64,000 nt of DNA from Octopus bimaculoides (lineage: Eukaryota). The notes under the pieces are model-generated. The model made no database searches. It was not told where the DNA came from and was given only the letters and a program-made list of their open reading frames with translations. The translations under genes were made by a program, and so were the position numbers. The stretch is from the NCBI RefSeq assembly GCF_001194135.2, contig NC_068982.1, positions 125,313,924-125,377,923 of the forward strand. The letters run 5' to 3'. Below, one piece after another: positions 23,146-52,777 of this stretch (positions are counted from its first letter, which is position 1; every line of letters begins with the position of its first letter).

Positions 23146-24054
23146 CTACGACTTTAGAGGCTGTTTTGATGGGTCTTTTGAAATATCATCTTTGTCTAGA
23201 GTATCTTTGTAAGTGTTATTAAGATCTGGAGAGACTGCTTTCCGACCATTTTTGTTCTTGTATAAATGCCATAATTCTTTCACCAAGTCAACTAGAACCA
23301 AGTCTGTGGAGTTCTTAGAAACAAGGCGTAATACAAAAAATCCGTCATCTCGCAGATAGTCTGTTGTGAAACGATGCACCAGTTTCTTGTCTTCACTTGT
23401 GAATATATCCTCTGAAGACTTCAAATATTTAGCGATATAATTAACATGGGACTGACGGAAAATTGTGCGGTAAATCCATAACAGTAAATTGCCACATGTA
23501 ACTATAGAAATAAAGACTAACCAAAACCAAAGAAAAATGAAGATTTTTTCATTAAATAGATTAACAGGAAGAACACACTGGACAGTGAAACGTTGAATGT
23601 TCTGTAACTGCCTTATCTCAAAATCACAGAGAGTCACACGAGGGAATCTGATAGATTCTTTCCAAGGAACCTTATTACGTACCATTTCAAGAACTTCATA
23701 ACCATATACTGAAAATTGGTTAGACATAAAGGCATTCAATAAGAAAAATTGTCCAATAACATTTGCAGCATACAGAGCTTTCACACAAACATAGAACCCG
23801 ACCAAAAATGTCCCTTCTCTTTTTGAACACATCAGACAGCAAACTTTTGTCATTTTCTGTCTCATTCGTACAACATAATTCATTTTATATTCGCGGTAGG
23901 TTTCCAGCCAGCGATCCATGTAAAAAGCTATGTGTTCGATAGTTTTCTGACGGTCTTCAGGGGATCCAAGTTGAGTTTGTTCAGCCAAATCAACAACACG
24001 CTCTAAATTAACACCAGATACACTGCTTAACAACCTCCAGATTATGTTAGGAAA
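23146..24054 (-). CDS. inx: Innexin, terminal coding exon (302 aa + stop; end of TM2, intracellular loop, TM3, extracellular loop 2, TM4, C-tail)
   Basis: ORF FPNIIWR...FPRVTLCDFEIRQLQNIQRFTVQCVLPVNLFNEKIFIFLWFW...DDGFFVLRLVSKNS carries the innexin motifs FPRVTLCDF, QCVLPxNxFNEKIFxFLWFW and DG.F.LR. The acceptor tttctattttcag|TTT at 24054 is phase 0, matching the upstream donor. Confidence 0.97.
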   Translation of the reverse strand, partial: FPNIIWRLLSSVSGVNLERVVDLAEQTQLGSPEDRQKTIEHIAFYMDRWLETYREYKMNYVVRMRQKMTKVCCLMCSKREGTFLVGFYVCVKALYAANVIGQFFLLNAFMSNQFSVYGYEVLEMVRNKVPWKESIRFPRVTLCDFEIRQLQNIQRFTVQCVLPVNLFNEKIFIFLWFWLVFISIVTCGNLLLWIYRTIFRQSHVNYIAKYLKSSEDIFTSEDKKLVHRFTTDYLRDDGFFVLRLVSKNSTDLVLVDLVKELWHLYKNKNGRKAVSPDLNNTYKDTLDKDDISKDPSKQPLKS

Positions 24055-24193
24055 CTGAAAATAGAAAGAATATACATATATTAAGAAACTGAAAACTTGG
24101 AAAGCATAAATGTGTGAGAGAAAAAAAATGGTTAAAGACAACTTCAGTTTCCCTCAAATTACTTACATGACGATTTTAGAAGTATGATTCAAT

Positions 24194-24197
<4 letters not shown>

Positions 24198-24233
<36 letters not shown>
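24198..24233. repeat. Poly(A)36 tract in the innexin intron (poly-U on the pre-mRNA)
   Basis: Direct reading; about 145 nt upstream of the exon acceptor at 24054. Confidence 0.95.
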
Positions 24234-24235
<2 letters not shown>

Positions 24236-25048
24236 CATCTCTCACAAGCCTAAGGCCAAATTTTTTTGAAAGAGTGGGATGAGTGGGATACTTCATTAAA
24301 ACTAGCCCAGTACTTGAATGGTGTTTTAGTGACCCCAGAAGGCTGGCGGCTAAAATTGACTGTGAATTCAGAACGTAAAAGGAACATAAATATCAATTTG
24401 GTCAACTTGGTGCCTGAAAGCATTTAAAACTCAAACAAAAAGGCATCGATGATTTGGTAATCAATGCAGAAATATGGGCCAATAAGGTGACTTATCTGTG
24501 GTCACTTAACTTGTCATAAGTAGCAGCTAAATTTCCTTCCAATAACACCTCACCAACTCAGGAAAGAACACACTGAATAATATGGATCTAGTTTTATTCT
24601 AGATAGCAAAAATGGGATGATAGCCACAGCTAGACTCCTTGTAATAATAAGACAACTTGATTTGGGCTGCTCTGGATCTTAATAATAACAACTGCAGGCA
24701 CAAAGAAATAAATTTATAAAGGAAGAGTGTCAGGTGAGGAAATATGGATATAGAAACAGAATGTAAGAAATATTATTCTGGCTTGAATTTTAATCTTATA
24801 TAATGAGAAAAAAGGACTTATAAGCATTAAGCAAAGATTCTAAATAAATTTGCATTTTTCATTCTTTTTAAAATTTTTTTGAAATAAATAACATTGAATT
24901 GAATGAAATTTCGACTTGTAATTTGATAATTCTACTTCTTTTAGTAAGTGGCTTCAGGAGAAGCATGAACATCTAGTTTTACTTCAAATAATATGAAACA
25001 GAAACAGATTCCTTGTGTCTGGAAATCAACACTGAGACAACTATTTAA

Positions 25049-25455
25049 CCCTTTAGCATTCCCATCAAATGTAATGATTATTTATTCACATTTGTTTTGA
25101 TGCCCTTCCTAACGCCAACCACTCTGAGAGTGTAGTGGGTGGTTGGCATTAGGAAGGGCATCCAACTGTAGAAACCTTGCCAGATCAGATTGGAGCCTGG
25201 TGCAGCCTTCTGGCTTGCCAGTCCTCAGTCAAATCGTCCAACCCATGCTAGCATGTAAAGCAGACGTTAAACGATGACGATGATGATGTTTTGAATTAAT
25301 CATGCATTATCTTGTAGCTCTGAGATTTTGATGATGTGAATGTATATTTTTAGAATGATATCGTAGGGTAGGTGTAAGAGGCCAGATCTTGCCAGTTTGA
25401 ACATAAACCAGGTAGAATATTTGGGTCTGAAATGGCGGGTTTGAATACTAAAGGG
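25049..25455. mobile_element. TTAA-flanked (piggyBac-like) MITE, interrupted by an RTE-tailed SINE at about 25099-25290
   Basis: TTAA|CCCTTTAGCATT ... AATACTAAAGGG|TTGA termini; the same body occurs at 29571-29796 and 34047-34585. Confidence 0.7.
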
Positions 25456-25509
25456 TTGAATACTACTTTTATATTGTCTGTTTTGTAAAATATTACTATT
25501 TCAGTTTAT

Positions 25510-25650
25510 TACATTAGGAAGGGCATCCAGCTGTAGAAACTCTGCCAAATCAGATTGGAGCCTGGCGTAGCCATCTGGTTCACCAGTCCTCAGTCAAATC
25601 GTCCAACCCATGCTAGCATGGAAAGCAGACATTAAACGATGATGATGATG
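25510..25650 (+). mobile_element. RTE-type 3' tail element ending in (GAT)n
   Basis: ggaagggcatccagctgtagaaac...ccatgctagcatggaaagc..acattaaacgatgatgatg; other copies at 25140, 25966 (minus), 29180 (minus) and 32620 (minus). Confidence 0.8.
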
Positions 25651-25965
25651 ATTACTGTTTTGTGCCATATTTATTAGGTTTAAGTACTTGAGTTGAGTCT
25701 GAAGTACGAACTGTAGGTTTGAGTCAAAGCCATCATCACTTAAAACATCCACTTTTCAATATACACATAGGTTGGATAGAATTTTTGAGGCCGATTTTCT
25801 ACGGAAGAATGCCTTTCCTGTCTGTCATAATCCACACCCATTTTCCCATGACCAAACATGTTTTCACAGAAGTTTCATAATAAAGAGTGCTGCTAGTATA
25901 ACAGCAACACTCATTTATGACTATCAGTCCATATCAAGATAAGGAGACAGTAACCCATACGCACA

Positions 25966-26410
25966 TCATCATCGTTTAACGTCCGCTTTCCATGCTAGCA
26001 TGGGTTGGACGATTTGACTGAGGACTGGCAAGCCAGAAGGCTGCACCAGGCTCCAATCTGATTTGGCAGAGTTTCTACAGCTGGATGCCCTTCCTAATGC
26101 CAACCACTTCGAGAGTGTAGTGGGTGCTTTTACTTGCCACCGGCACGAAGGCCAGTCAGGAGGTACTGGCAACCGCCACGCTCAAAATGGTGTACTTTAC
26201 GTGCCAGCTGCACAGGAGCCAGTCCAGCGACACTGGCAACGAACTCGCTTGAATGTCTTTTCACGTGCCAGGAGGGCGATGTTGGTAACGGTCACGCTCA
26301 AATGGTGCTATTTACGTGCCCCCGGCACGGAAGCCAGACTGCTGGTGCTCTGGCAACGATCACACCCGGACGGTGCTCTTAGTGATCTACTGGTACAGGT
26401 GCCATATATA
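25966..26410 (-). mobile_element. Longer RTE-tailed SINE with internal ~70-bp degenerate repeats
   Basis: Reverse-complement (GAT)n tail plus a body of repeated ctggcaac...aaatggtg...tttacgtgcc units, shared with 29180-29460. Confidence 0.78.
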
Positions 26411-26658
26411 TATACTTGTGACAGTTTTCTGTCAACCAACTCCTTTCGCAAAGCTATAGAAGATGCTTGCCCAAGGTGCAGTGCAGTGGGACTGAACCCA
26501 AAATCATGTGGTTTGGAAGCAAATTTCTTACCACACAGTAACACCTACACTTGTGGCATGCATAAATATGGCAGGCAGTGTTCAAATTGTTTGAAACAAG
26601 ATAGATAAAGATGAAGTTAGGTATTGTTTTTATTTCATTTAAAACTATAATATCTTAC

Positions 26659-27007
26659 CTTAAAAAGAAATGCCATGAAAAGTAAAATCAAAGGGGTCCA
26701 CTGATAGTAAGTAATTTCTGCATCCGAACGTGTAGTGAGGTCTGTAGGTATGATGTCGTTCATTGATATGTAGTAGGTATTTGAAATCCAGCAGTATGAT
26801 TTCACATACTCGACATAATGTCCAGGAAATTCAGCAGGAGCCCAACAATGAATTGGGTCTCCAACATATTGTGTGGTTGTGACTACGATAGCAAATAGAA
26901 CAAGCAGAAAAACTGTCCACAAATGATTAAGCCGATCACCCCAGTCATCATTGGTGCTGCCCCGCAGTCTCGACCATGACATAAACCCACCAAGTATTGA
27001 GCCAATC
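26659..27007 (-). CDS. inx: Innexin, internal coding exon (116 codons + 1 nt; N-terminal region, TM1, extracellular loop 1, most of TM2)
   Basis: Reads (G)IGSILGGFMSWSRLRGSTNDDWGDRLNHLWT...QYVGDPIHCW.P..F...Y...YCWISNTYY...ITYYQWTP..LLFMAFLFK, with DDxxDRL, GDPIHCW and YYQW signatures. Acceptor tttatctttccag|G at 27007; donor AAG|GTAAGA at 26659. Confidence 0.96.
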
Positions 27008-29179
27008 CTGGAAAGATAAATAGAAAAATATAAATAAATAAATATGAAATATTGAAATAATAAAAGCCAAATTAGTTAAGGTTATTGCCCTAAATAATAC
27101 AATTTAGAACATGACTATTGTAAAGTACATATTTACTATTGGCATGTGAACCAACCAATTCCTTTAGTACACCATACACATTAAATTAATTTGTTGCAAC
27201 TTCTGGTTTTCTATGCTAGCATGGATTAGATGGGTACATATTTGAAATGGTAATTTACATCTGGATACTCTTCCTGTCACTAATCTATACTGGTTTTTTT
27301 TCAAGGGATTTTTTTTTTATCCCACTGGTCTCCAAAGCACAAGCAGCAAACCATAATATCAATAAGGAATGTACATATTTGCATAATACAGGTATATCTA
27401 ACACAGGCATGCCAGCATCTACAGCAATAATCATACAAAATACAAAACATCAATATTTAATATCTGGCCCTTTAAGTATTGTAATTACTGTTTGAACTTA
27501 AATTTGTAAAGCAACCCAAGCTACAAGATATGGTTACTTCAAATATGAATAAAATATGCATTATACTTGACAGAATTTGAATAATAAATAGAACATTAAC
27601 AAATTGGGGTTAGTACTAACATTTAAGAGACCATTAGTAAAGTGAAGTCAATACAAACATAGTTAACAGACCATAAAGGTAGGACAGAATATTGGCAAGA
27701 GTTGTGGTTTTTAACTTGACCCCCACCTGACCACAAATCTCACCAGTCAACTTTGTCTTTCAGCCTTCCAGGGTCAATAAATTAAGTACCTGTCCAGAGC
27801 AATGCAGGGATTGGTGAAATTTATTAGAGAACCAGATAAGGTGCATTGCAGTATGTGTGTATATCTAACTCTGTATTCTGACGGAAACATTTGTGACAAA
27901 TAATGATGTCAAATAGTTCAGCTTTTGCTTTTTCCTAGTACAAAATCAGTGGTGTGGATAAGGACACATTTGCATGCAAAGTTAACTGTTGGTCCTCCAT
28001 GAAGTTCAACAATATATTGAAGAAAAAATACCCAAATCTATCTTTATGCAAAGTGATGAGAGCTTAAAAAGGAAGACAGGGGAGATGCATGGGTACCCTG
28101 TTTGGAAGAGGAATAATGAGAAGTGGTACGACTTCATTTATTTTAACTTAACAAATATTGTAAAATGATTTTGGTATCCTTATGAGTTTTCCATAGAAAA
28201 AGATAATTAAATTAAAAAAGAGAATAGTCATAAAAATTAACATCAATTTGACTAACAGGTGTAGAAGAATAAAGTTTTCCCATGGAACAATAAAATTTAT
28301 CGTGAAAATTTTTTTTACCCCAAACCAGTTATAAAAATTCCAAAGCTGAAGGGTAAAATTAAAAGACTACTAATAAATAACTGTAAACATGAGAAAATAA
28401 TGGTATGAAATTGTTTTAGCTTTCCAGTGGGAACTACACTATTATTGTTTCATATGAATGATCAATAAAAAAACAGAAGCTCAAGATATTGAAGTATTGA
28501 TTTTGGTATTAAGAAAAGTGCTTCTTACTGTCAGAGACATTTCTAATTGTACAGGTAAATACAGAGATTGTTTCTTTGGACATTGTGCCTGTTACATAAC
28601 CTCCAGACTTTTCACCATTATCACCTGATATTTATTTTTTTTTTAACACTATTTATAATTTTCCAGATACTTTTATCTAAACACAATGCCTTCCTCTCAC
28701 ACAATACAATTACACCTACACACAATCATATCACACCCCCACTATCCCATGCCACTACACTCCTGTACTTACACACCTCCACACATCCCGTCCCACCATA
28801 CACACACCTCTCCCTGGTTAACTCTATACACAGATAACTTCCTGTATATACACACACCTACCCCACCTATGCCTTCCCTTCTAACTTCCCTCCTAACAAA
28901 CTGCTTTACTATCTGGCCCTTAACCATGCCCCCCCCCACCACTTCGCGGACTAACTTACCTAACCACCTTTTCTCATTTTTTCTGCTTTCCCCTGTATTT
29001 AAGTGTTAAACTAATACATTTATTATAACTTGTACTTCCTGTTTCATTTTTATTTTTATACTCATGTCTAAGTATAGGAATGATGCTCAATGAAACAAGA
29101 ATATTGGAATTTCATGCTAGCAGAATTAAGACAGAACTAGATTCAAATCAAAGAAAGCACAGGAAGAAGTTATCAATAC

Positions 29180-29460
29180 ATCATCATCATCATCATCATT
29201 TAACGTCCACTTTCTATGCTAACATGGGTTGGACGATTTCACTGAGGACTGGTGGACCAGGAGGCGACACCAGGCTCCAATCTGATTTGGCAGAGTTTCT
29301 ACAGCTGGATGCCCTTCCGAACGCCAACCACTCCGAGAGTGTAGTGGGTGCTTTTACATGTCAGGCGGTACTGGAGACGGCCATGCTTGAAATGGTGTAT
29401 TTTACGTGCCACCTGCACAGGAACCAGTCCATTGGCACTGGCAACGATCTTGCTCGAATG
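29180..29460 (-). mobile_element. RTE-tailed SINE copy
   Basis: (CAT)n followed by sequence homologous to 25966-26250. Confidence 0.8.
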
Positions 29461-29570
29461 TCTTTAATAAAAAGTTTCTCTAATCAGATACCTAGTCTAA
29501 CTCATGTAAATGTAGAAAATAACAAGACAGTGAGCCTTGAAAAATATAAAACTGGTAGCACAAACTTTAA

Positions 29571-29796
29571 CCCATAGCATTTAAACTGGCCACATCTGGC
29601 TTAAAATATTCTTCATGCTCTATGTACAAAGTGGCCAGATCTGATCTCTCACACCAACTCTACCTATACTATACATGTCATTCCAAAAAGTAACAGTTAC
29701 TTCATCAAAATCTCGAAGCTACAAGATAATGCATGGCGAATTCAAAACAATATGAATACATTAGCATTACGTTTGACAGAATGTGAATACTAACAG
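29571..29796. mobile_element. TTAA-flanked (piggyBac-like) MITE
   Basis: TTAA on both sides (29567-29570 and 29797-29800); imperfect TIRs CCCATAGCATT / AATACTAACAG; the body is homologous to 25049-25455 in reverse. Confidence 0.72.
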
Positions 29797-30029
29797 TTAA
29801 GTGAGAAACAATTTTGTATTAAGATTTTGCTGACATTTTCGTCTTTTTATTTTCTTAATGTTATCAATTCCTATACTAAATAATATTTTGGAACCAGTAG
29901 GAATTACCAATTTGCTTATCTGTACCCTTCTTTTACCTGTATATCATTTAATTGGTTGAAATATTATCAGATATAGGATACATATGATAAGAAATACATT
30001 TGGAAAGTATATTAGTAGAATATACACAT

Positions 30030-30420
30030 GATGCAGGAGTGGCTGTGTGGTAAGTTGCTTGCTTACCAGCCACATGGTTCCCGGGTTCAGTCCCACTGCA
30101 TGGCACCTTGGGCAAGTGTCTTCTGCTGTAGCCTCAGGCCAACCAAAGCCTTGTGAGTGGATTTGGTTGACGGAAACTGAAAGAAGCCTGTTGTATATAT
30201 GTATATATATGTGTGTGTTTATGTGTCTGTGCTTGTTCCCCCAACGTTGCATGACAACCGATGCTGGTGTGTTTACGTCCCCGTAACTTAGCGGTTCGGC
30301 AAGAGTGACCGATAGAATAAGTACTAGGCTTACAAAGAATAAGTCCTGGGGTCGATTTGTTCAACTAAATGTGGTGCTCCAGCATGGCTGCAATCAAATG
30401 ACTGAAACAAGTAAAAGAGT
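30030..30420 (+). mobile_element. tRNA/CORE-like composite SINE family B, full length
   Basis: Head gcaggagtggctgtgtggtaag...ggttcagtccc, CORE-like accttgggcaagtgtc, an internal microsatellite and a 3' module to gaaacaagtaaaagag. Further copies lie near 3060, 16930, 18370, 26420, 33470, 54610 and 61770. Confidence 0.85.
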
Positions 30421-32412
30421 ATGTCAAAAGAAATGTCATTTACAGTAAGAGAATGTTTTCTTTGATTTAATCTTGCTACTTCAACATCTTGAACTTCTGT
30501 TCCTTTATTGATCTTCCATAAAATATGGAATAATGGAATGGCTTCAACAAGGAAAGCAAAAATCTTCATCTTTTGTCATTGTCATTGGGTCAATATCCAC
30601 TTTTCTATGCTTGCATGAATCAGAATTTGTAAAAAGCAAATTTTCTATGTCAAGAAGGCCTCATTGCTGCCAATTCTAACCTATTTCCAAGCAAAGTAAT
30701 ATACACACACATATACATCTGTATGTATGCATGTGCACACACACAGTGGGCCTCTTTTTTCTTATAGTTTCCACCTGCCAAATCAAGATTTTGGTTTACT
30801 TGGGGCTGTAGTAGAAGACACTTAGCTGCAATGCAGTGGAACTCTACTTGAAACCTTGAGGTGGGAAGTGAATGACCTTAACCACATGCCCGTGTCTATT
30901 ATTAACCTCATATACACATTTTACTTTATCCTGCAAATACACCTTTCATTCTGTCGGCATTTATTCAACATAATCACTAGAGCAAAGACTACAGGCTGCA
31001 CCCATTTAACCAAGCTAAAAATAAGCAGCTCAGTTATGTCACTATAACTCAAATTATTAGCTGGAAATGTACACTCTAAACTATGGAAAATACAAAGCTG
31101 TACACAACAAATATGTGAAAGAAAATGTAGCTGCACTGCATTTTCTAATTTTTGTTTAGCAATCGTTTCTGTTGAATTAGTGGGGAAAATGTCAGCAAAG
31201 TCAAAGATTTTACTATTAAAACCCAAGTTGTGAAGATTACTCGAGGAAAAAAAAAATTTTGTAAGTTTGACAAATAGAAATTACTTTGAGGTCATTTGAT
31301 CAGCTAAATCACTTTATAAAGATTGAGTAACAAAATAAATTTAAACTGTGCATTAACCATTTTGTGATCATATTTCTAATGAAATGCTCTGCTTATACGT
31401 TTCAAATTATTGAAAATATTCAAGGATTTGGAAGGGATAAGATAGCTTAAGCCCTTTAGCATTCACATTATCAAATGTAATGCTTGTCTATTCACAACTC
31501 CTGGTCCATTGTCATTTCCTCAGTGAGGCCCAGCATCTGAAGATTCTTTCTCACCACTTCATCCCATGTCTTCCTCTTCCACAGGTTCCCTCCACTATTA
31601 GAGATCTAACTAGTAAATTATTCGGGCCAGATGCAGCCAATTTAAATGCTAATAGGTTCTTAGTTGGCACCAAACATATCAAATAGTCATAAAAATAAGG
31701 CGGTTACATAAATAATTGCCAAAATGTGCTTGTGGCTAAATACATTTTCAGTAATTATTAACCATACCAACACTGAAATAGAACTTTAGATCCACTGGCA
31801 GAATTTGAACTTGCGACCTTGAGGTCAGTAGTCTAGCATATTAATAACTTGGCTTCCACAAGATTTTTTTAAAGCTGTTTATTAAATTTTCTGCAAGAAA
31901 GCCACTTTCTTGGCAAACAAACAAAATAATGGGAATAGCTCAGACAACAAACTGTCAATTGAAAAAAATGGAACAAAAGACTAAATCTTGATTAGAATTA
32001 AGGTACCAGGGTGGGGCAGGGTAATGCGGTCAGCAGACATTCTTAAATTCTACTAGGTTAGTCTGGCCTAGCCAGCTTTCAGGAATGGACAATAAAAAAA
32101 CTACNNNNNNNNNNNNNNNNNNNNNNNNNNNNNNNNNNNNNNNNNNNNNNNNNNNNNNNNNNNNNNNNNNNNNNNNNNNNNNNNNNNNNNNNNNNNNNNN
32201 NNNNNNNNNNNNNNNNNNNNNNNNNNNNNNNNNNNNNNNNNNNNNNNNNNNNNNNNNNNNNNNNNNNNNNNNNNNNNNNNNNNNNNNNNNNNNNNNNNNN
32301 NNNNNNNNNNNNNNNNNNNNNNNNNNNNNNNNNNNNNNNNNNNNNNNNNNNNNNNNNNNNNNNNNNNNNNNNNNNNNNNNNNNNNNNNNNNNNNNNNNNN
32401 NNNNNNNNNNNN

Positions 32413-32451
<39 letters not shown>

Positions 32452-34169
32452 ACAGGTTTTAAGTACAAGTGTAAAATTTTGAAAGCTGAAGGACTAAACT
32501 GTTGCTATTATTTTCATGTCCATTTTTCCATGCTTGCATGGGTTAGATATTTGTTGAGGCAGATTTTCAATAGCTGGATGCCCTTCTTGTCACAAACTCT
32601 GACCTGTTTCACCATCATTTTAATGTCGGTTTTTCATGCTGGCATGGGTTGGATGGTTTGACAGGAGCCTCACCAGGTTCCATAGCCTGTTTTGACAGTT
32701 GCAACAGTTGGATGCCCTTCCTAATGCCAACCACTTTATAAGAGTGTGCTGGGTGCTTTTGATGTAGCACCAGCAACAGTGCCTTTTACATGGCACCAGC
32801 ACCAGTTTACAAACATATTTCTCCAAGTCTTTCAGACACAAACAGTACAATGGCATGACATGCTATCAAGGAAGGCTGCAAATGGATGACACTATTTGTA
32901 TGATGGTAACAGCAGTTAGTAATTAGCACCAATATGTCAAAACAAGCACACACACATACAAGTCTAGGGCCTGAATAGAAAACATTTGCGCAATGTGTCA
33001 TGCAGTAGGACTGAATTTGTAATCACATGGTTGCAAAGAGAATTTCTCAACCACAAAGCCGTGCCTGCACCTAATCGAGTACGTTAATCATATTTTGTCT
33101 AACAAAAATATACCAAACAACTTGTTAACTAAAAATGTATCTCATACAAAGCAGTTAATTAGCAGAATTTAGTAACTTGGTTTCATAAGACTCCATCCAG
33201 GTGTCCATGAAATACAAATTACACATACTTTCACAGATGAAATTTACTCACTAAGCATTTACAAAAATAATTAGTTTTGATTGAAACAAAACCCTATTAT
33301 AGTCAAAACCAGCATAATCCTAATAGATTAGTATTAAAAGATTTGCCGATTAACCAAGATAGGATTTAAAAATTCAAGCATATACAAAATAAGGAGCAAA
33401 ACTCTACCACAGATACCTACATACAATAATGCATCTTTATGTCACTTAAATTCAAATGCAGAGTTAAAATGCGGTGGTTTCCCATGGTTATGTGGTTAAG
33501 ATTACTTTGCAGCCATGTGGTTTAGGTTCAGTCCCACTGGGACCCTGTCTTCTGCAATAAGCCAAGGCTGACCAATGCCTTGTGAATGAATTCGGTAAAT
33601 GGAGGAGACTGTGACAGCCTGTCATGTATATGTGCGTGTAGAGAGAGACCTCCAGAAAAAGTACCAGACTTAAGAAGAAATAAGTACTGGGGTAAATATG
33701 TTTAACTGAACTTTTCAAGGTGGTCCCCAACATGGCCATACTCCAATGAGTGAACCAAGTAAAAGATAAAAGCTACAACCACCAATTTAGTACATCACAC
33801 ATCCTCTCTGTTATAGAGAGTATAGAATTTCTCATTAACATCTAATAGGCAGCTGAAAGAAGCATACAATTTGGAGAATACGCCATAATAAAAAGATCAT
33901 ATGACTGTCTAAAAGGTTAAAAGAGTTTATAGCTGTCAGCTTGTGCTTTTGGACTAAGTAAGTTGTGGAAGACCATTTATATTGACAATGCAAGGATGCT
34001 AATCATGTTAATCTTTCAAACCACAAGACTGACTTTTGCTCTTTAACCCTTCAACATTCAGATTACTTTATCAGATGTAATGCTTATACTTATTCCACGT
34101 TACTTTGGATAAATCCTGCATTATCTCATATCGTTGCAATTTTTTATTTTAACAATGTGATATTACTCT

Positions 34170-34383
34170 TTACTCTCTCTTTTACTTGTTTCAGTCATTT
34201 GACTGTGGCCATGCTGGAGCACCGCCTTTAGTCGAGCAAATCGACCCCAGGACTTATTCTTTGGAAGCCCAGTACTTATTCTATCTGTCTCTTTTGTCGA
34301 ACCGCTAAGTTACGGGGACATAAACACACCAGCATCGGTTGTCAAGCGATGTTGGGGGGACAAATACAGACGCACAAACACAA

Positions 34384-34420
<37 letters not shown>

Positions 34421-34545
34421 CACGACGGGCTTCTTTCAGTTTCCGTCTACCAAACCCACTTGCCCAAGATGCTATGCAGTGGGACTGAACCCGGAACCAT
34501 GTGGTTAGTAAGCAAGCTACTTACCACACAGTCACTCCTATTGTA
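34170..34545 (-). mobile_element. SINE family B inserted in a TTAA-MITE (34047-34585)
   Basis: Reverse complement of the 30030-30420 element, with MITE halves on both sides. Confidence 0.8.
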
Positions 34546-34865
34546 GTGTAAGAGGCCAGATCTACCCAGTTTTAATGCTAAAGATTTAAAGCATCACAGG
34601 ATAACTTGTGGTGAGGCAAGAATTTAAGTTTTTACTTTCATTAAAAAAAAACAAAAAAAAACTGAAAATAGTCTATCTCATAACCCATTCACTTAAATTG
34701 AGTAGGAGTTAAAAATATCAGCAAAGATAGAGTTCTACCATCTGCAACGATTTATAAATCTAAACAAATATCAGTCATCAGCCTTGAAATAAATTTAACC
34801 ATGAGAAAAAGTTGACTTTTCTTGAAAATAATTCAGTCAATAGCACAACTCTGTGCTGGATGGAT

Positions 34866-34908
<43 letters not shown>

Positions 34909-35943
34909 TACACAAAGGGAAGAAATTAAAACCTTTATTTCTTTCTTTTAAGGCATAGTTACTGATTTACAGACAATTAAAAAGTTGTTGACACACAGAA
35001 ATTAGATAGAGCATAGGCAGAAATAGCTGAAAGATATGAAATCATAAAGGCCTATGGTGACAAACTGGTTTGACAAGAAAACAGTAAACAAGCCCTGAAT
35101 TAGTAACTATAGAAGTTGATACAGTAGTCAGTATACAAATATACGAAGATTTTATACCTCTACCAACAGACTGTTATAGGTGTGTCTAAGAAAAGTTTAC
35201 AAGGAGATATTATGTAATAAATATCAATAACAAGCCTATACTGATAGGACTGAATAATAATGAAATAATGTCCAATAAAAGAGTAATTTCTTTTAAAGAA
35301 AGTTGACAATTGATTCTGGACATTATAAAGTGTAGTAGCAGAAGTTTTACAGCATCAGAGAAAATACCTTCAAGCTTTGAGTTCAGCTTTGTTTTTTTTC
35401 ATCCTTTCAGTATCACTAAATTATCAACCAAATCCAGTGGGTAGAGATAATGAAGAAACCCTCAGCCTTCAAAATTACTAGCCTTGTGCCTGCATAATGC
35501 CTAAACAAAGATTTTCTACTTAAATTTTCATTATCAGCTAAAATGACTAAGGCAGTGGTTGAAAGGGAACCTTTATATGTTGGAAGTCTACATTGAAGCT
35601 AACTGCTAACAAGGTTGCATTGCAAAACTAAAATTTCTGAACAGCAGAACCTTATTATTTCTATAAAATATAATAAACCATTCATTAAAAAAATTATCAA
35701 AATTTAAAAGGGAGTTTTAGAATAAGCTATCTGCATTATTAGCTAATTGATTTTGATTTTTAATGCAAGACATAGAAGTTTTTATAAAATTTGTAATTAA
35801 TTGAAAAGATAAATTTAAATATTAGATAAAAATGTATTCCAGAATAATGATTTTCCCCTCAAATGTACTTGTTTCTGAAGGTTTGTTCCACTTGCAACAT
35901 AATGGTTGGACAAGTTCAGCTACTTCATAGAAGAATAATTGGT

Positions 35944-36067
35944 AATTTTTCAGATTAACACCTGCACGATTTTCACTAGGGTGTTAGGGTTAGGGTTAGG
36001 GAATTCCGTCCCTAACCCTGACCCTAACACCCTAGTGAAGATCATGCGGGTGTTAATCTGAAAAATT
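35944..36067. repeat. 124-bp palindrome with inward-facing telomeric TTAGGG repeats
   Basis: Two 59-nt arms, 55/59 complementary, around a 6-nt loop (attccg); gttagggttagggttaggg faces ccctaaccctgaccctaac. Confidence 0.93.
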
Positions 36068-39000
36068 ATTGAATAATTTAATGCCCAGAATTAGAAAGAA
36101 TTGAAGCTGTAAAACAAAGTGCTCAGCATTCATGTCTAAATTTACATCTCACCAATAGAAAAAAAATAGTGTTCTGTCTGCATAGAATACATACAGCACT
36201 TTCTACATCAATAGCTGTAAATCATCTGCAACCAGTTTTTGCTTTTGGATCCCCTTTGAAACCCATTTTACTCTACTCAGACCCCTTTAGCCATTTGATG
36301 TTGGAAAAATCCCATTATAATTTTATAAATAAATATTATTTGAAAGTATGTATAGAAAATTGTTAAAATAATTTGTGTATTGCAAGTGTAACCAATTTAT
36401 TGCACATAATTCTTAACAATGTGGACCACTAAGGGTCATGCAGACCCCTGATTGAGAATCACTGATCAACATATTCAGAAAATCTAGTAAGGACACACCA
36501 TCTGGCCATGAGAGTGGCATGGTTCATAGCAAGCACCAAACTCACAGACCCTGTTACATTATTCACACTCAAATCTACAATCCTCTCCCAATAAGCTCAG
36601 ACAAAAAGAAATACAAATAACAGCTACCTCAATAGTGTGTCACAAAAAAACAAAAATAGTTAAGTGTTCTGAGGAATCAACCCATCTCTACTGTGCTCAC
36701 TTCCAGAAACAGAATGGACAGTAATGGCTCTCACCCAAGCAGAGGCATGGAATGCATGAAACAGGACTAAATGTGTCGCAAGTCACCTTATTAACTTAAG
36801 CATGTAAAGTATAAATCATAAAAGTGGATTATATACATGCAAATATGAATAAATATATATTTACTAATGAGTAATTTACACAAGTGGCAAGAATTATTGA
36901 TTTATTGGTTTACTAACTATTTAAATTTCATACTTTATAAAAAGCTTAAGACTTTAGATCCAATCAATACTGCATGCATACTTCTTTACTTCGTCAAATG
37001 AAGAATATTTATCAGTATAGAATACCTCTAAATCATTGATCAGATTTCCTTTTTACAGAATAGAAACGAGATCTTCCTTTATTTTAAATAAATCCAAACT
37101 CTTTTTGCTCCCAAATTAACAACTGTGGGCATCGAAGTAGGAAAGAGCAAACAGCTTCAGACCAGAGAATGACACCAAGCCCATAGAGCATTTTCACCCA
37201 ACCACACAATACTGTATGAGTGAGTCATTATTTACCCTATTTCCAACATAAATTTTTATTCTTCAGCTATACCGAAAATATATACTTCCATTCACTATAG
37301 AAGTAGTCCATGACTGCTCTGAACCATGCATGCGCCTTTGCCCAACTCTCTCTCAGCCAGCACATGATAATTCAAGATGGCACTATTTCTTCCATAACAG
37401 ACAGCAGCCTTAAATTAAACGCCTTTTCTAAAATTATCACAACAATAATAACTGATTTCTTTTTCCAAGTTATCTAAAAACCTTTTCACTTTTCAGCAAA
37501 TGAAATCTTCTCATGAGAGTGCAAAAACTTGAAGTTCACTGGATAGCTATACCACCAACAGAAAAACAAAGAACTAAGTTCCACACATTCTGGTCAAAAA
37601 GGAACTTCAGAGCTATTTACAATAATACTATTTCACGTATATTGTTTATAAAACTCTCACCTTCCAGCATCTTATTTATACATCTTGCTGGAAAATATTG
37701 ATCTATGTTGTTCTATGATTGAGAAGTTATATTATCTATAAAGGATATTGAGTTCACAGTTTAAAATGAAAAGATAAATAGTGAAATTGATACATTGATC
37801 CTGTTCTAATGTAAAATAGAATATAAAATACAAATATTGAAAAGTTAAAATTAAAAAATGAAAATTTAAACTATTAACAAATAAAGTCATCTATAAAGTT
37901 TACTTTATTCATCACTACTTATTAGTAGTTTCCAATGTACATACATATATTGTTCAAGTGATAATACTGCTATAGTTTTAATAATGATTCTCATTGTTGT
38001 TATATGGTTTCAAATATCTAACACGGACTTGTAACAATCAAGCACGCTCGCGCGCGCGCGGGCATACACACACATTATTATACATATACACAGACACAAA
38101 AGCACAATATATGTACAATGAACAAAACTCAGCCCTTGAATCAGTAACTTCTGAAGCATGCTTTTGTAGTTAAACACAAACACACACGTGTGTGTGTGTG
38201 TTTGTATTTTTAAAATAGCTAAACCTCTGTGTGTAATTGGACATATTTCAGATTACTAATTATAAAGAAGTTGATTGCAAAATACATTTTACATATGTGA
38301 GTATACGTCTATCACCAATACACATCTAAACGAACAGAGGAATTTGCTTAAAAAAAAAAAAAAAAAGATCAGGAAATCTCCTTCAAAACCAAATTTTGCA
38401 GTCGTTATTGTAGGAGACATCGGTTGAACAAAGGGAGGAATGATCACAACTGGAATGCATTTGAAGAATGTGTGCCCCAGGGCTAAACAACTGAACGTTC
38501 TCCACATCACCACGACATTTACTATGCTCTGTCGTCCCAACGAACCAAGCAACTGATCCCATTAAACTCTTGGAAATTTTGGAGGGATGGGTTTATTTTG
38601 CAAGGTCAGATTAATGGAAATTAATTAAATTATATGGCTTGAATGAGGAGTAAGAAACATATAAAGGAAATTTCAGGAGTGGCTTTTAAATAAAGGCTTA
38701 AACAAAAAAAAAAGGCGGTAGATGCAGTAATAACAGAAAAGGGGAAAGAAAGTCAGCCTTAGTGTAGGGAGCTACAGTTTGCACCAACTTAAAGCCAAAG
38801 GATAGCCAGTTTCTTACAAGAATATTTTAGTTATTCTGTATATTAATTGCTGTCAGTTTGTGATAGTTTTATATTATATTATGTCTGGAAAATTAAGGAT
38901 ATATTTCAAGTGCATTAAAAAAACAAGTCACAAAGCAATCACGTTTTCCGGTCCAACTAAATTTTTCAAAAGGCAAAATTATTTCAAGTAGTTCCAAACT

Positions 39001-39171
39001 AGGCTACAAGCAATGAACAAATGTTCATACTTTCTTGCCTCTAGTTATTTTCTTTACAAACTATTCTAGAACATACATTAAAAAGTATCTAAAAGAGAAC
39101 ATCAAAAGAATATTGTTATATTGTTAAGATTTAGCATGCAACCTCTGATTTATATAAACAATAAGTGTACA

Positions 39172-39345
39172 GATTAGCGGTATTTCGTCTGTCTTTACGT
39201 TCTAAGTTCAAATTCCGCCGAGGTTAACTTTGCCTTTCATCCTTTTAGAGTCGATAAATCAATTAACAGTTGTGTACTGTATCGATCTAATCGACTGGAC
39301 CCCTCCCCAAAAATTTCGGGTCTTGTGCCTAAAGTAGAAAAGAAT
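39172..39345 (+). mobile_element. SINE family A copy
   Basis: gcggtatttcgtc...gttcaaattccgccgagg...cctttcatcc core. Confidence 0.82.
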
Positions 39346-40059
39346 AAGCGTACAGATTACCCACATACATTAGTATATATTTATAACTATAGTGTCTATA
39401 TACGCAAGAAAAGCCGGTAAGTGGTTAAGAACAGTCACTGAGTCAGGGTTTGAACCCACAAGGTATTTTGGGCAAATATCTTTCAACATACCCTCAGATC
39501 GACCCAAGGCTTATTTATGAGTGAAAATAAAATCTGTCAGACCGACAGGATTAATATTCAAAGCGTCGACCTTTTTTCTGTTACACAATGTATCAAACTG
39601 TGCTCGAGGATTACGTGATTAAGGGTAAGAAAAAGTATATGTGGAATATTCTGTTACTTAAAGAGTGTTGATTCAACTGAGTATGTAACTCAGTTGATCA
39701 CATAAACTAGAATACTCATTGTCGAAAGCGACGGAGATCTACTTCACACACACACACATTATGAATACAGAATGTGTCCATACAGAGTGATTTTGTAGGG
39801 AGAAAGAGATGTATGATAGGCAAGCAGCAGATAGAAAAGGGAGTTACAGCAAGGATATATGAACATTACCAAAATACACAAACACCACATGTTCATAGAG
39901 GCAAAATAAAGGAAAGGTTCTCTTCACAAGAAAATTACCGGGAAAAGATGATCATTTTAAACTATGGCTATAAATAAATGATGTTAGAAAAGGCAGCTTC
40001 TAATTTGAGCTGTACAAAGCAAAGAAAAATTTTATCATAAAAGTAATTCTAAAACTTAC

Positions 40060-40076
40060 TCCTCGTCTGAACCCAT
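40060..40076 (-). CDS. inx: Candidate alternative innexin first coding micro-exon, MGSDEE
   Basis: GCT ATG GGT TCA GAC GAG GA|GTAAGT: G at -3 and +4, consensus donor and phase 2. It joins in frame to 27007 and is preceded by a plausible acceptor (cattctttctag). Confidence 0.4.
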
Positions 40077-42025
40077 AGCTAGAAAGAATGTTGAGGCACG
40101 GCTTGTCTGTCTGGTGTTTAAAGACTGGGACTGGTTATAATTTAATGAGAAAAACTTTAGTTTCACCCACAGGTTTTTGTATAGGCTATATATTTTCCAT
40201 CCTTTCAGGTATGTCAAAAATGTGTATTGAAGCATGACATGATATCAAATGTTTACAAAGAGGAATGCCCAAACAATGAAAGAAAGAAAAAAGGTGTTTC
40301 TAAGTACATAGTTCATGAGAAACAACTTCATGATCTGCTCAAAACTGAAGAGTCATTAATTTTAGAGGCGGTCAAATGATATAGAAATAAAAAAATAATT
40401 TTAAATGATATACAAACGAAAATAATTTTAAATGAACTTACATATTTATATCTGTTTGTTTAGCGCGGCTTCGGGTAATGTGATTTCCCTTAAGTCAGAA
40501 ATTAAAGGAACAAAAACAGGGGAATGAATAAATAATAATCACGTGGAGGTTTATTAAAAAGGGACCAGTAAAGTTCACTTGCAGCAATTAATTAGTTATT
40601 TTTGGTGAGGTTGAATATAATCAAAGGGGCCGACAATAATCAAAAAATTGTCGAGTTATCAAGTTTTAAAAACAAGGGAGGCGTTTAAGTGTCTTTTGTG
40701 TTGTTTTTAACTGGGATTAATAAATTATTAAAATGTTATATTGTCTATATTAACACCAATGTTGTTTTAGTACACGAGGTCCTGTAAAATTTTTTAAGTG
40801 CAGGCGAAAAATGTCTATTAGCTGCCTGAGAGTAGTAACTCCATACTGATCGTGTCAACTGAATGGTTAGAGAGAGGATTAATAACACTTAAGAGTGGAG
40901 AAAGAGACATTGAGATGATGACAATCGGACCAATGACAGAGCAGCATATCAGTGTGTGGATGTGTGTGCGGGAACAAATCTGGTACAGGGTAAGTAATTG
41001 TTTGTGTATGGCTGACTGTGACACAGAGAGAGATAGAGAGAAAAAGAAAACTTCATACACACACATAAAATAACAACACTTTCAATGGAGACAAAATGAA
41101 GTCTTGCTAAATTTTTTTCCTTTAAAGCATGTCAAAGGTTTGTTTGGCAGTGTGACGTATTTAGTTACTTGCTATTATATATATGTATATATGAAAACAA
41201 AAATACTTTTAATTTTGAGAAAGAATATTAATGCAAGTATTTTAAGTTTTAAAATAGTTGTTTTTAAACAAGAATGCAGAAATAACAGTGGTTTACAGAT
41301 AAGGATCCGGAGACGACGGCACATGTTAGATTACANNNNNNNNNNNNNNNNNNNNNNNNNNNNNNNNNNNNNNNNNNNNNNNNNNNNNNNNNNNNNNNNN
41401 NNNNNNNNNNNNNNNNNNNNNNNNNNNNNNNNNNNNNNNNNNNNNNNNNNNNNNNNNNNNNNNNNNNNNNNNNNNNNNNNNNNNNNNNNNNNNNNNNNNN
41501 NNNNNNNNNNNNNNNNNNNNNNNNNNNNNNNNNNNNNNNNNNNNNNNNNNNNNNNNNNNNNNNNNNNNNNNNNNNNNNNNNNNNNNNNNNNNNNNNNNNN
41601 NNNNNNNNNNNNNNNNNNNNNNNNNNNNNNNNNNNNNNNNNNNNNNNNNNNNNNNNNNNNNNNNNNNNNNNNNNNNNNNNNNNNNNNNNNNNNNNNNNNN
41701 NNNNNNNNNNNNNNNNNNNNNNNNNNNNNNNNNNNNNNNNNNNNNNNNNNNNNNNNNNNNNNNNNNNNNNNNNNNNNNNNNNNNNNNNNNNNTAGTACAA
41801 GACGAACGTGTCTCCTTTGTTCTAAGCTTCCAGCAGCAGCATTCTCAAAGACTCTCCAGGAAACTCAAGGAAGATACCATACATTTAGCTATGGATGTTT
41901 CGCATATTTTCATTGTATAGATATACATTCCAATTTCATATTGGGAGGCCGTTTCAAATTTATGGAATGGAAATGACAATCACAGCGTTTTTTTTGCCAG
42001 CTTTTTGCATCAACGTTAGAAATAT

Positions 42026-42066
<41 letters not shown>

Positions 42067-42995
42067 CATTCTCTTTCTTTCTGTCTTTCTTTTTCTCTCT
42101 CGCTCTCTCTTACTCACCCTCTTTCTCTTATTCTTTATCTATTTTGAATTTTCCCACTTTTTTTCCTCCTAACATTTTACGTTAAGATTAAGCAAAACTG
42201 AAGGATTCCAACAGTTGACATTTTGTATTTAAACAAATGCTAAAACAAAGTATTCCATATGCTTCTTCATATTTTCTTTTACATACATCTTCTATACACT
42301 AATACACATTCTGTTTTGGGACATCTGAACATGTGTTTTTAGTTAATTTTACCATTTCAAAGCCAAAGCTAGATTTTCTCACATAATTCCTCAATGCAGA
42401 ATGGAAATGGGAGGTATCTAGTCATTCGAGTTTAATTTGACATTTTTTGTTCTACGTCTCAGTTAAGCCAGTTATGACATAGATTTCTACAGTCTGACCC
42501 AAAATAGAATCGTCTCGACATATTTTCTAATGAAAATATATGCAAAAATATTTCACTCATATATTTAATGCAATAACTTACCAGGAAACCTAAAAAATTA
42601 TTGTCTTGTGAATGGAATACTCAGGAAAAAGTGATTGGCGGAAATATTTAGTTTGTTATTCTCGTATGATTCTACAAACCATGGTAGTCGATTGGATTGC
42701 TAGTCACTAAATGAATTGTATTTATTTTATGCCATCGGGAGTGATAAGACGTAAGTGGTCCTTTACGAGATTCGAGCTCACAGCATAGCAAAGCTAAATA
42801 GTATCTGCCGCGCTACGCCGCTCCGGGTGTTACCTTAATCATTGTTTTAATATCATCCTTTTCATGGCTCTAATATAAATATGATGCTCACATAAGATGA
42901 ACAACCAAATTAGCTAATATTTTTAGTAGTTGTTTAGTGAATTCAGTTAAATAATTGGAAGTCATCACGCAAGTTATAATATGGAGTAAACTTAC

Positions 42996-43012
42996 ACAAA
43001 AAGTTCAAACAT
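42996..43012 (-). CDS. inx: Candidate innexin first coding micro-exon, MFELFV
   Basis: ACAACA ATG TTT GAA CTT TTT GT|GTAAGT: good start context, consensus donor and phase 2. Splicing to 27007 gives MFELFVIGSILGGF and a 424-aa protein. No transcript evidence is available. Confidence 0.5.
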
Positions 43013-43364
43013 TGTTGTATCTGGAGATGGTCATTTTTTTTTCTTCAAATAACCACATGCACTATATACTCATTCTTCACTTCAGCTTGACGAAAGATTT
43101 CAGACAAAGGACACTAAAATAGGAATAAGATTAAAGCTAAAGTGCGTGTGGTTATTTGTCAAGAAAAGAAAAGAAACAAACCATCCCCGAATGCAACAAT
43201 ATCTGTTTCAACACATGGTTTCACATCAGGAATCTTGCAAAACAAATGCACAAACGTTCTACAAACACTTTTCCCTTTTATTAGTTTGGATCTCTTTCCC
43301 TCTTCATTACAAATGTATCATTACAGGTTTTGTGAAGCCGAATCTATTGAACACCTTTCTTATT

Positions 43365-43590
43365 TCTTTACTGCCCACAAGGGGCTACACACAAAGGGGA
43401 CAAACAAGGACATACAAACGGATTAAGTAGATTATATCGACCCAGTATATAACTGGTACTTATTTAATCGACCCCGAAAGGATGAAAGACAAAGTCGACC
43501 TCGGCGGACTTTGAACTCAGAACGGCTGACGAAATACCACTAAGCATTTCGCCCGGCGTGCTATCGTTTCTGCCAGCTCGCCGCCTTAAT
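43365..43590 (-). mobile_element. SINE family A, near full length
   Basis: Reverse complement of the 63103-63340 element. Further copies lie near 43935 (+), 46310 (+), 47340, 47880 (-), 49625 (-), 62690 (-) and 63760 (-). Confidence 0.87.
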
Positions 43591-43612
43591 TGAACACCTT
43601 TCTTTTAAGGCA

Positions 43613-43683
<71 letters not shown>

Positions 43684-44507
43684 CTTCCTAATAAACGGTT
43701 CCGATTTGTAGCACTACATCCTTCCTTCCGTATATATCCTGTTTTTCCCTTTGTCAACGTTTAACTACAAACTCTCTTGAGCTGATGAAACATCTCTTCA
43801 CACCTCAATCACATTTCCCACTAAATCATTCATACCAGACATACACCACATGTTTGGAAGCAAATGAGTGCACCTCAATGAAGTTGCTAGAACTGCTAAA
43901 AGTAGCGACCAAAGTAACGTCTTAAAAAGAAAAAAATGCGGTATTTCGTCCTTCTTTATGTACTGAGTTCAAATTCTGCTGAAGTCGATTTTGCCTTTCA
44001 TCCTTTCGGGGTCGTTAAATTAAGTACCAGTTGAACATTGGGGTTGATGTAGTCGACTCATTCCCTCCCCTAAAATTGCTGCCCTTGTGGCAAAATTTGA
44101 AATCATCATTATTATTATTATTAGGCAACTGGTTAACCATTTAACTTATTAACTAATCGATTGTTTGATTAATCACTCGGCCAAATCAACCAGGTTTATC
44201 AAAGTCCTTTCGTCACCATTCGCAACTTCATCAATGACATGCCCTTTTGTACTCCAAGTCAACTTCAGCCTTATTCATTTATGCTATATTATTTTTCTTT
44301 ATTATCTATTTGTCTATCCTCTCCCAGTCGTTCCTTGTTTTGTTTTTTTCTTTTCTACTACTCCTCCTTTCTCTCCCCGCCTCTGCCTTTGTGTACTTTT
44401 AGTAATTTGTAAAATTGTAGTCTCCTCTTTATCATAGAGCCTGTTCTGCTTGATTTCTGGTGCCACGATAAAATACTTCGGCCTTTTGCCGTTTTATGTG
44501 ATAAGTC

Positions 44508-44859
44508 TGTAGTAACGCCGTGCGCATGCGTAGTCTCACGCATGCGTGGAATTCAACATCCAAGCGTTCCCGCTTTATTCACTCTCTTTCTCGCCTGGCC
44601 GGCATTGAGCATGGACGCGTCAAGCCTTCTCTCCATCTTTCGAACTCACGCCAGACAGCTCACATCAACATTCCGGCGTCTCAGCAACCATGTTCTCACA
44701 CACAAAAGGCGTCTCAACAACCAAGAGTAAAGCTGTCTATTTACCACCATGAATAAATATTGTTGTGTTGATTAGTTTGGAGTTCTGCGTTCCGTTAATT
44801 TCTAATTTAATATAGGAAAGTAGGTGTACACCTAATGGTGTGTAACCACTATTCCTATA
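44508..44859 (+). mobile_element. Candidate 5' LTR of a truncated LTR retrotransposon
   Basis: Starts TGTAG (alternative start 44416) and ends CTATA (a decayed CTACA?) one base before a tRNA-Trp PBS-like sequence; CpG-rich, with AATAAA near 44753. No partner LTR was found. Confidence 0.5.
44521..44546. promoter_or_regulatory. Two GCGCATGCG-type palindromes (NRF1-like motif)
   Basis: tgcgcatgcg at 44521-44530 and cgcatgcg at 44539-44546 in a CpG-rich patch; function untested. Confidence 0.25.
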
Positions 44860-44860
44860 G

Positions 44861-44878
44861 TGGTGACCCCGACGCGAT
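44861..44878 (+). promoter_or_regulatory. tRNA-Trp primer-binding-site-like sequence
   Basis: TGGTGACCCCGACGCGAT versus the complement of the tRNA-Trp(CCA) 3' end as recalled (TGGTGACCCCGACGTGAT): 17/18. Confidence 0.75.
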
Positions 44879-45709
44879 TCAGACACGCAGCCCGCTGAGC
44901 TACAATAACAACTATTTCTATATAACTGATAACCAACATTCCTATAAGTCTAATAGACAGCATCCGGTTTAATACCGCCGACTAGAGCTTGGATGTTCAA
45001 TCTATTGCAAGAATTCGTATCAGTCATTCAGTTAAAGAACTACATAGCCTCACTTTGTAAATATATTTATTTTTATTATATTACAAGAAGTCATGAAAAT
45101 GATTCGTAGTTCTGGCTGACAAAATGACAAATGCATTATCAGAAAAACTTCGAGAGAGATATCTGGTGAAAGAGCTATTTCACCTCAAGTAGCCATCTCG
45201 TCCTTGATCATATTGAGTAGAGAAATGATTGGAGGACCCAGGACACCGGACATTTCCGCCTCTATAAATTCGAAAAGAAATGTATCAGAGAGGAGCCGAT
45301 ACTTTGTCAGTTTGTAATCCTTCACTTCTGTAACGATTTTTATGACTTACTCCCCCTTATTTTTTCAATGAAAGCTTAATGCGAGAATAGTCGTATAATT
45401 CAGCGTCTTCTTCGTAAGTTCGTAAATAAAATTTTGTTGAGCTTAGAATATCAAAAAAAAAACAAAAAAACATAGACTTTAAGCTGAAATACTTAGGGAT
45501 TGAAGCTGTGGTTACTGGCAACTTCTGTGGTACTTTTTTTTTTATCTGCCTCATGCTCAAACTAAACTTTAAAAAACAACAAAACAAATGATAAAAATAG
45601 CAAATCGGATCGAACAATTTATTCAACTCTATCCAAAGCCCATTTCTCTCTAGTAATCTACAACACACGAAGCAATCAATGTGTGTGTGCGTGCGCGTGT
45701 TTGCATGTA

Positions 45710-52605: not shown

Positions 52606-52777
52606 CAGGGTCAAAACCCCTACCTAGAAAGAATAAAAGTTCCAGAAGCATCGATGACAATTCAGAAGAAAGAAAAACTGGGAGAGGAAACAGAGAAGAC
52701 AGTCCAAAGCCGAGAATAGTAAAGAAGAGACATCAATGGCATCTGCACCAGGAGGAGCGAAGGACTTACGAAAGACA

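Follow-up and report, generated by a model that had tools for sequence, protein, structure and literature searches.

A likely two-state N-terminus in an octopus innexin: a start codon split across a splice junction and a 19-nt microexon with its own ATG

An innexin gene and its constant exons

The stretch of DNA considered here (the window) comprises 64,000 nucleotides (nt) of the Octopus bimaculoides genome (RefSeq assembly GCF_001194135.2, contig NC_068982.1, positions 125,313,924 to 125,377,923 of the forward strand) and contains one innexin gene, on the minus strand, which carries the RefSeq name "innexin unc-9". The channel body is encoded by two exons, 27007-26659 and 24054-23146, and the tip of its N-terminus would be set in the 13.4-kb intron upstream of them. 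An original prediction, made from the letters alone, had placed at least five alternative first micro-exons in this region, each with a promoter of its own, by which one constant body would receive hydrophobic, acidic or basic tips. We consider it likely that the N-terminus has two states, determined by one splice choice between a 47-nt exon ending in AT, which is the default, and a 19-nt microexon, and that the other four predicted segments are products of chance. Everything said here about splice isoforms draws on RefSeq models, genomic splice sites and transcripts of other cephalopods. The parts of the gene are as follows, a slash marking a splice junction.

23146-24054, minus strand: last coding exon (exon B, FPNIIWRL...KQPLKS), with the stop codon TAG at 23148-23146
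26659-27007, minus strand: constant coding exon (exon A), acceptor ttatctttccag/G ATT GGC, donor AAG/gtaaga
40060-40078, minus strand: 19-nt microexon CTATGGGTTCAGACGAGGA, acceptor acattctttctag/, donor /gtaagt, with its own ATG beginning at 40076
40442-40488, minus strand: 47-nt exon 2, an internal 5' exon, acceptor ttctgacttaag/, 3' end ...AAATAT/gtaagt

The best protein match to the spliced query falls on a 37-kb locus of O. bimaculoides (L002; GenBank GCA_001194135.2, CM046602.1), which is 100% identical to the window and has the same runs of N. The spliced translation of the window equals both O. bimaculoides proteins (P0279 and P0280), and the translation of exon A is 100% identical to RefSeq XP_014772958.1 and XP_052821540.1. 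Against the spliced protein the Pfam family Innexin (PF00876) scores 315.8 bits (cutoff 25; E=4.6e-94) over profile positions 1-331 of 333, and the YYQW motif and the extracellular-loop cysteines are present. The only solved innexin found as a structural homologue is Caenorhabditis elegans INX-6 (5h1q, E=2.5e-49). A protein search with exon A alone returned fragments and no ortholog; the full-length spliced query found orthologs, and the cluster at 90% identity holds 10 proteins from four octopod species, in which the sole N-termini for the gene are M- and MGSDEE.

Exon A encodes IGSILGGFMSWSRL...LFMAFLFK, that is, the N-terminal helix, the first transmembrane segment (TM1), the extracellular loop E1 and the start of TM2. 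Its first base, a G, is the third position of a codon, so that a phase-2 donor is required upstream; reading of the sequence thus bears out the earlier observation that this exon has an open frame ahead of its first Met and takes such a donor. The eight residues before the Met at 26982 (IGSILGGF) are kept exactly in a related genomic contig (L001), where the DNA identity is 79%, the changes are synonymous and the acceptor is the same, and this stretch is therefore coding. The intron of L001 could not be aligned, and it consequently gives no data on conservation further upstream.

A start codon split across a junction and a microexon that would override it

How is the first codon of the protein completed? 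In the default form, the AT at the end of exon 2 (40488-40442) is joined to the G at 27007, so that the start codon is assembled across the junction. AT (40443-40442) and G (27007) make ATG and give M-IGSILGG, the start of the 419-residue isoform X2. This 419-residue MIGSILGG form is found in O. bimaculoides (XP_014772958.1, X2), O. sinensis (X3), O. vulgaris and Argonauta hians; as it has a single residue before IGS and the phase needs two upstream bases, its start codon is split. The annotated coding range begins at 40443 of the window (position 10001 of L002), and the O. sinensis annotation has a coding piece of 2 nt for the 419-residue product. A transcript (L003) reads ...ccaaaaAT/GATTGGCTC and leaves the genomic sequence of L001 exactly at the acceptor (AT/GATTGGC), and six transcript contigs of a third species read ...ttaaatAT/GATTGGCTC. 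The AT/G junction is confirmed by these transcripts from two other cephalopods. The seven GTAAGT sites between 27008 and 45000 include the donor of exon 2 (40441), which was passed over in the original prediction because exon 2 has no ATG of its own. In O. vulgaris, exon 1 lies about 18.5 kb upstream of exon 2, which is thus internal and has an acceptor. No ortholog of this exon 1 was found in the window; the syntenic interval holds an insertion of a short interspersed element (SINE) and a gap (51544-52201), so that the true 5' end of the gene is not visible in this assembly.

An O. vulgaris model of 449 residues (CAI9718040.1) runs its open reading frame through exon 2 (…GKSHYRSRAKKAD-M; about 28540-28586 of the O. 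vulgaris locus L006). Exon 2 of O. bimaculoides (40442-40488) differs there by a 1-nt and a 6-nt indel; the extension does not appear to be conserved as coding sequence and is probably 5' untranslated region or an upstream open reading frame.

In the alternative form, the 19 nt placed between exon 2 and exon A would turn AT/G into AT/C and supply an in-phase ATG of their own. Inclusion would give MGSDEE-IGSILGG, with five extra residues (G-S-D-E-E), three of them acidic, at the tip of the helix. The microexon lies 364 nt downstream of exon 2. Its acceptor, in fuller form cgtgcctcaacattctttctag/, has 76% pyrimidines followed by TAG and ends 2 nt before the ATG. Isoform X1 (XP_052821540.1 in O. 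bimaculoides, XP_036354405.1 in O. sinensis) has 424 residues and begins MGSDEEIGSILGG..., and in-silico splicing of exon 2, the 19 nt, exon A and exon B gives exactly this 424-residue protein. Short exons with an in-frame N-terminus, a pyrimidine-rich acceptor and a GTRAGT-like donor were sought along the 13.4-kb intron in a structured scan, and the microexon was its sole top-quality match. Its length is below the 27-30 nt that bound a microexon, the sites at its 3' and 5' sides look functional, and it is conserved: the three Octopus species have it in identical form, and the acceptor is kept as well. One other match of the scan, a cassette-like segment of 56 nt (35026-34971), was rejected, since the sister species have ACG for ATG, AT for GT, and indels.

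It is the comparison with Argonauta that is informative, since the introns of Argonauta and Octopus can no longer be aligned outside the exons. The homologous segment there, ATGGGCAAGGATTCTGATGATGG/gtaagt, reads ATG GGC AAG GAT TCT GAT GAT GG, that is, MGKDSDDG in phase 2, and begins 338 nt after the donor of the AT exon, as against 364 nt in the window. Relative to the Octopus microexon it shows mostly third-position changes (TCA/TCT, GAC/GAT, GAG/GAT) and a difference in length of two codons, which leaves the phase intact. Among the 20 GT[AG]AG donors of the 15.5-kb Argonauta intron, this is the one with a phase-2 ATG, where shuffles expect 3.8.

Two further features of the segment may be recorded. 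About 20 nt upstream of the acceptor stands a TGC motif (gccgTGCctcaacattctttctag, 40079-40100, minus strand), which the three Octopus species share. TGC-like motifs are found beside SRRM4-dependent microexons of other animals. For the MG- start, N-myristoylation was considered and dropped, as the PROSITE-type pattern fails at position 6.

Several observations weigh against the two-state reading. In Argonauta no AG directly precedes the ATG, and the exon would need to begin 65-79 nt farther upstream. That the three Octopus species have the microexon in identical form is uninformative and is not used here as positive evidence, because the same 5.3-kb block contains 35 perfect runs of at least 30 nt. 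On pattern alone, a cassette of equal quality occurs in about 8-14% of shuffled introns. The 24 transcript contigs of a relative of squid grade have the M-IGS form only. The searchable collections yielded no Octopus transcript spanning the junctions, so that the exon chain of X1 is inferred and the isoforms are automated RefSeq models. Finally, "isoform X2" of the gene in O. sinensis lies outside the collection searched, and a third N-terminus is possible.

Cassette, first exon or chance segment

In O. sinensis, a paralogous innexin (P0192-P0198) lies on the same chromosome at a distance of 200 kb; it has an intron at the same position and in the same phase, again with a split AT/G as the default. 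In O. sinensis (X1-X3), O. bimaculoides and O. vulgaris, isoforms of the paralogue start with M-VWG, MG-VWG and MSQ-VWG. In the O. sinensis locus (L013, CM016860.1), the coding range starts at an exon ending AT/gtaagt (10001-10002). The MSQ form uses an exon of only 6 nt, GAGTCA (14839-14844, in the context ttttcctcag/GAGTCA/gtaagt), since AT, GAGTCA and G make ATG AGT CAG; having no ATG, this exon must be internal. The MG form is explained by ...aacag/CCCTTTTAAATAAAACAATGGG/gtaagt, an exon of 22 nt with its own ATG, the ATGGG end of which is at 19241-19245. The paralogue thus inserts either 22 nt with a new start or 6 nt in frame with the split ATG retained, and it gains one or two uncharged residues where the window gene would gain an acidic tip. 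A search for Octopus transcripts of the MSQ and MG forms gave no more than a partial contig and an M-VWG form of squid grade.

There is also a second copy of the window gene, more than 90% identical and on another chromosome, in O. sinensis and O. vulgaris (P0277, P0278, P0282). Its isoform X4 (410 residues) starts at an internal Met (MSWSRLQ) and has no IGSILGGF tip. An open stretch in the window (58983-59085, minus strand), MAKSIICILARMQKSRVSIRRGYPYHAVGYTTHL followed by G/gtgatt, is homologous to the N-terminal extension of O. vulgaris P0282; this could be a 5' exon lying far upstream, or sequence derived from a transposable element that was taken up by the gene predictor.

Is the MGSDEE segment a cassette or a first exon? 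If it were a true alternative first exon, an internal promoter would lie within the 364 nt that separate the ATG from exon 2, and the transcript's first exon would end at 40060. There is no ATG in the last 121 nt before 40076, so that a short 5' untranslated region would be workable; the want of an AG directly upstream of the Argonauta ATG agrees with this account, and the N-termini of shakB and unc-7 are generally described as arising from alternative promoters. Nevertheless, a strong acceptor, acattctttctag/, stands 2 nt before the ATG and is kept in the three Octopus species, and the ATG-less 6-nt exon of the paralogue shows that internal micro-cassettes occur in the same intron. On these two grounds inclusion as a cassette fits better than separate promoters, the segment at 40078-40060 is probably a cassette flanked by exon 2 and exon A, and the mechanism of separate promoters is probably wrong; we regard a promoter-driven MGSDEE exon as unlikely.

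A less probable account, to which we give little weight, takes isoform X1 as splicing noise or an artefact of annotation: only M-IGS would be made, and the donor at 40060 would be cryptic, rarely used or reached by retention of the 364-nt interval. The automated origin of the isoform models is in its favour, as is the fact that assembled transcripts of two other cephalopods have only M-IGS. Against it, X1 has been modelled independently in two species, and Argonauta retains, at the syntenic site and with codon-like differences, an acidic MG... segment in phase 2 that is followed by a GTAAGT donor. Retention is made less attractive by the seven upstream ATGs that it would put before the MGSDEE start.

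The array of first exons can be judged against its own observations, which are literally correct and statistically unremarkable. All five ATG-to-GT segments are present on the minus strand, free of stops and in phase 2, and the count of GTAAGT donors with a stop-free phase-2 ATG is exact (three of the seven on the minus strand of 27008-45000). Counting in shuffled introns, which had been proposed as a check, gives no clear excess over chance: over 2000 dinucleotide shuffles, GTAAGT donors with a phase-2 ATG at a distance of 5-32 nt numbered 0.9 on average, and three or more occurred with P=0.067. This value falls to 0.02 for distances of 5-17 nt, and to 0.001 only for a window of 14/17 nt chosen post hoc. 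When the donor is defined as GT[AG]A, phase 2 has 28 segments as against 27 and 25 for phases 0 and 1; with any GT the numbers are 175 as against 161 and 176. Looser donors, including the GTGACT and GTAAAT that the prediction had accepted, therefore give no phase-2 excess. Upstream on the same strand there are 427 phase-2 ATG..GT segments, and by an approximate donor weight matrix of our own making, used qualitatively only, the five rank well below many other chance segments. A repeat search within the window around the candidates found none inside a repeated element. The pattern exceeds chance only weakly, and only under the definitions with which it was proposed.

Across the whole intron the window can be aligned with the corresponding loci of O. 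sinensis and O. vulgaris, the identity being about 86-90%, and the four segments other than MGSDEE fare there as follows.

28773-28786, minus strand: MCGGV, which survives in both species with a 3-nt in-frame deletion
36787-36803, minus strand: MLKLIR, weak donor GTGACT, its ATG being ATA in both species
37236-37249, minus strand: MLEIG, the GT of its donor being GG in both species
42996-43012, minus strand: MFELFV, upstream of exon 2, where a 1-nt insertion in both species gives ATG TTT TGA and changes the phase

Conservation across cephalopods, proposed as a check, thus holds for MGSDEE in the three Octopus species and Argonauta and is broken in the sister species for the segments at 36787, 37236 and 42996; for the last of these, a 12-nt indel in the sister species also deletes the region of the upstream AG. 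The 28773 segment keeps its phase and has no polypyrimidine acceptor and no annotated isoform, while an out-of-frame ATG (28799) stands 13 nt upstream of it; we treat it as a chance segment, though some slight doubt remains. Other segments with just as little support (MKW, MPLPR) are likewise shared with the sister species, and together with the 35 perfect runs they indicate that the survival of a short motif at such divergence says little. The four remaining segments appear, from these comparisons, to be chance products of an AT-rich, repeat-laden intron. What stands of the original prediction is that tiny upstream pieces give alternative tips to a constant innexin body, one of its five segments, MGSDEE, being the start of the RefSeq X1 model in two Octopus species. 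The two coding 5' pieces that find support are AT (40443-40442) and ATG...GA (40076-40060), and no hydrophobic or basic tip occurs among the 10 clustered octopod proteins. Although five phase-2 segments exist and the nominal P for three of seven donors is 0.02-0.07, an array of at least five promoter-driven first exons is highly improbable given that the four octopod species have M- and MGSDEE alone, that three segments are disrupted in sister species, that the one at 42996 lies upstream of an internal exon, and that the whole Argonauta intron has a single segment of this kind. The five-way code probably shrinks to a modest two-state switch, likely operated by cassette splicing.

The remaining features of the window concern its gaps, composition and repeats. 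Gaps overlap no candidate and no real exon. The one at 32105-32412 falls in (GT)n, and in O. sinensis and O. vulgaris about 10 nt separate its flanks; the one at 41336-41792 falls in (CT)n and corresponds to about 250 nt in the same two species, in which order and orientation are kept across both. Both are also in GenBank GCA_001194135.2, and their stated lengths are probably overestimates. A CpG-depleted block (18001-38000; observed/expected 0.04-0.5 inside, about 0.6-1.1 outside), broken only by young SINEs and coding exons, takes in both coding exons, the 5 kb that follow the stop codon and the 11 kb of the intron nearest to exon A, and stops 2 kb short of exon 2 and the microexon. This block may represent a gene-body domain methylated in the germline; its use as a marker of a transcription start site near 38 kb was dropped once exon 2 (40.4 kb) and the upstream exon 1 of O. 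vulgaris had been found. Several copies of SINEs are found within the intron, at about 29.9-30.4 kb and 34.2-34.5 kb, and further upstream at 54.5-55.6 kb. Other mobile-element sequences are a reverse transcriptase (RVT_1, 60138-61052, plus strand, E=1.4e-16), an endonuclease/exonuclease/phosphatase fragment below the Pfam cutoff (57798-58370, minus strand) and a Mos1-type HTH_48 domain (52665-53036, minus strand).

Relation to known systems and significance

The N-terminal helix of INX-6 forms the funnel of the pore. In the alignment with INX-6, residue 17 of the long octopus form stands opposite residue 15 of the chain, by which both octopus forms would be of normal length. Cassette microexons of bilaterian neurons, 27 nt or shorter, are included by a programme that depends on SRRM3/4. 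The octopus segment resembles them in its 19 nt, in canonical strong sites on both sides, in a TGC about 20 nt upstream and in belonging to a gene of neuronal type. It differs in that neural microexons are typically multiples of 3 inside a coding sequence, whereas the 19 nt would destroy a split start codon and supply a new one.

Alternative N-termini on a constant innexin have precedents in unc-7 and shakB, and RefSeq already has both octopus isoforms. In C. elegans UNC-7 (isoforms a-j), the N-terminus, by its length and its charged residues, decides voltage dependence and heterotypic rectification, and the N-termini, in six groups, count 24 to 168 residues ahead of TM1 (PMC7455501). UNC-7 is like the octopus gene in joining several N-termini to one innexin body, which it does by alternative 5' exons; it differs in its six groups, as against the two supported octopus states, which are five residues apart. 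The passages of the same article concerned with ShakB (neural, neural+16, lethal) describe alternative N-termini on the two sides of a rectifying synapse, the swapping of which changes the behaviour of the junction (PMC7455501). The ShakB variants replace a whole N-terminal region, taking in more of the protein, whereas the octopus switch would prepend MGSDE(E) to an identical helix. Since length and charge of the N-terminus exert such control in UNC-7, it is plausible by analogy that an acidic tip, with three negative charges per subunit, affects gating or selectivity. A literature search for innexins together with microexons gave nothing relevant. What seems undescribed is a start codon spanning a junction and overridden by an ATG-bearing microexon, together with the recurrence of this device in a paralogue and the fact that Argonauta conserves it.

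The innexin N-terminus lines the funnel of the channel, N-terminal isoforms decide rectification in worm and fly, and little is known of how cephalopod gap junctions have diversified. This locus does not hold a large combinatorial code; the gain is mechanistic tidiness and a concrete experiment, rather than something of a new kind. It offers a clean and testable two-state case, 419 as against 424 residues, in which an acidic tip of five residues would be the sole difference, and the compact splicing device on which it would depend appears to recur in the neighbouring paralogue. We may tentatively suppose, rating the idea somewhat below an even chance, that octopod innexins share this device, in which conserved cassettes of 6-22 nt in the first large intron extend or replace a split start and so act as a dial, possibly neuron-specific, on the charge and length of the tip. 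If this is true, the dial would add three acidic residues per subunit in the present gene, and by analogy with UNC-7 and with connexin N-termini, the polarity of gating or the rectification of particular electrical synapses could be set by it.

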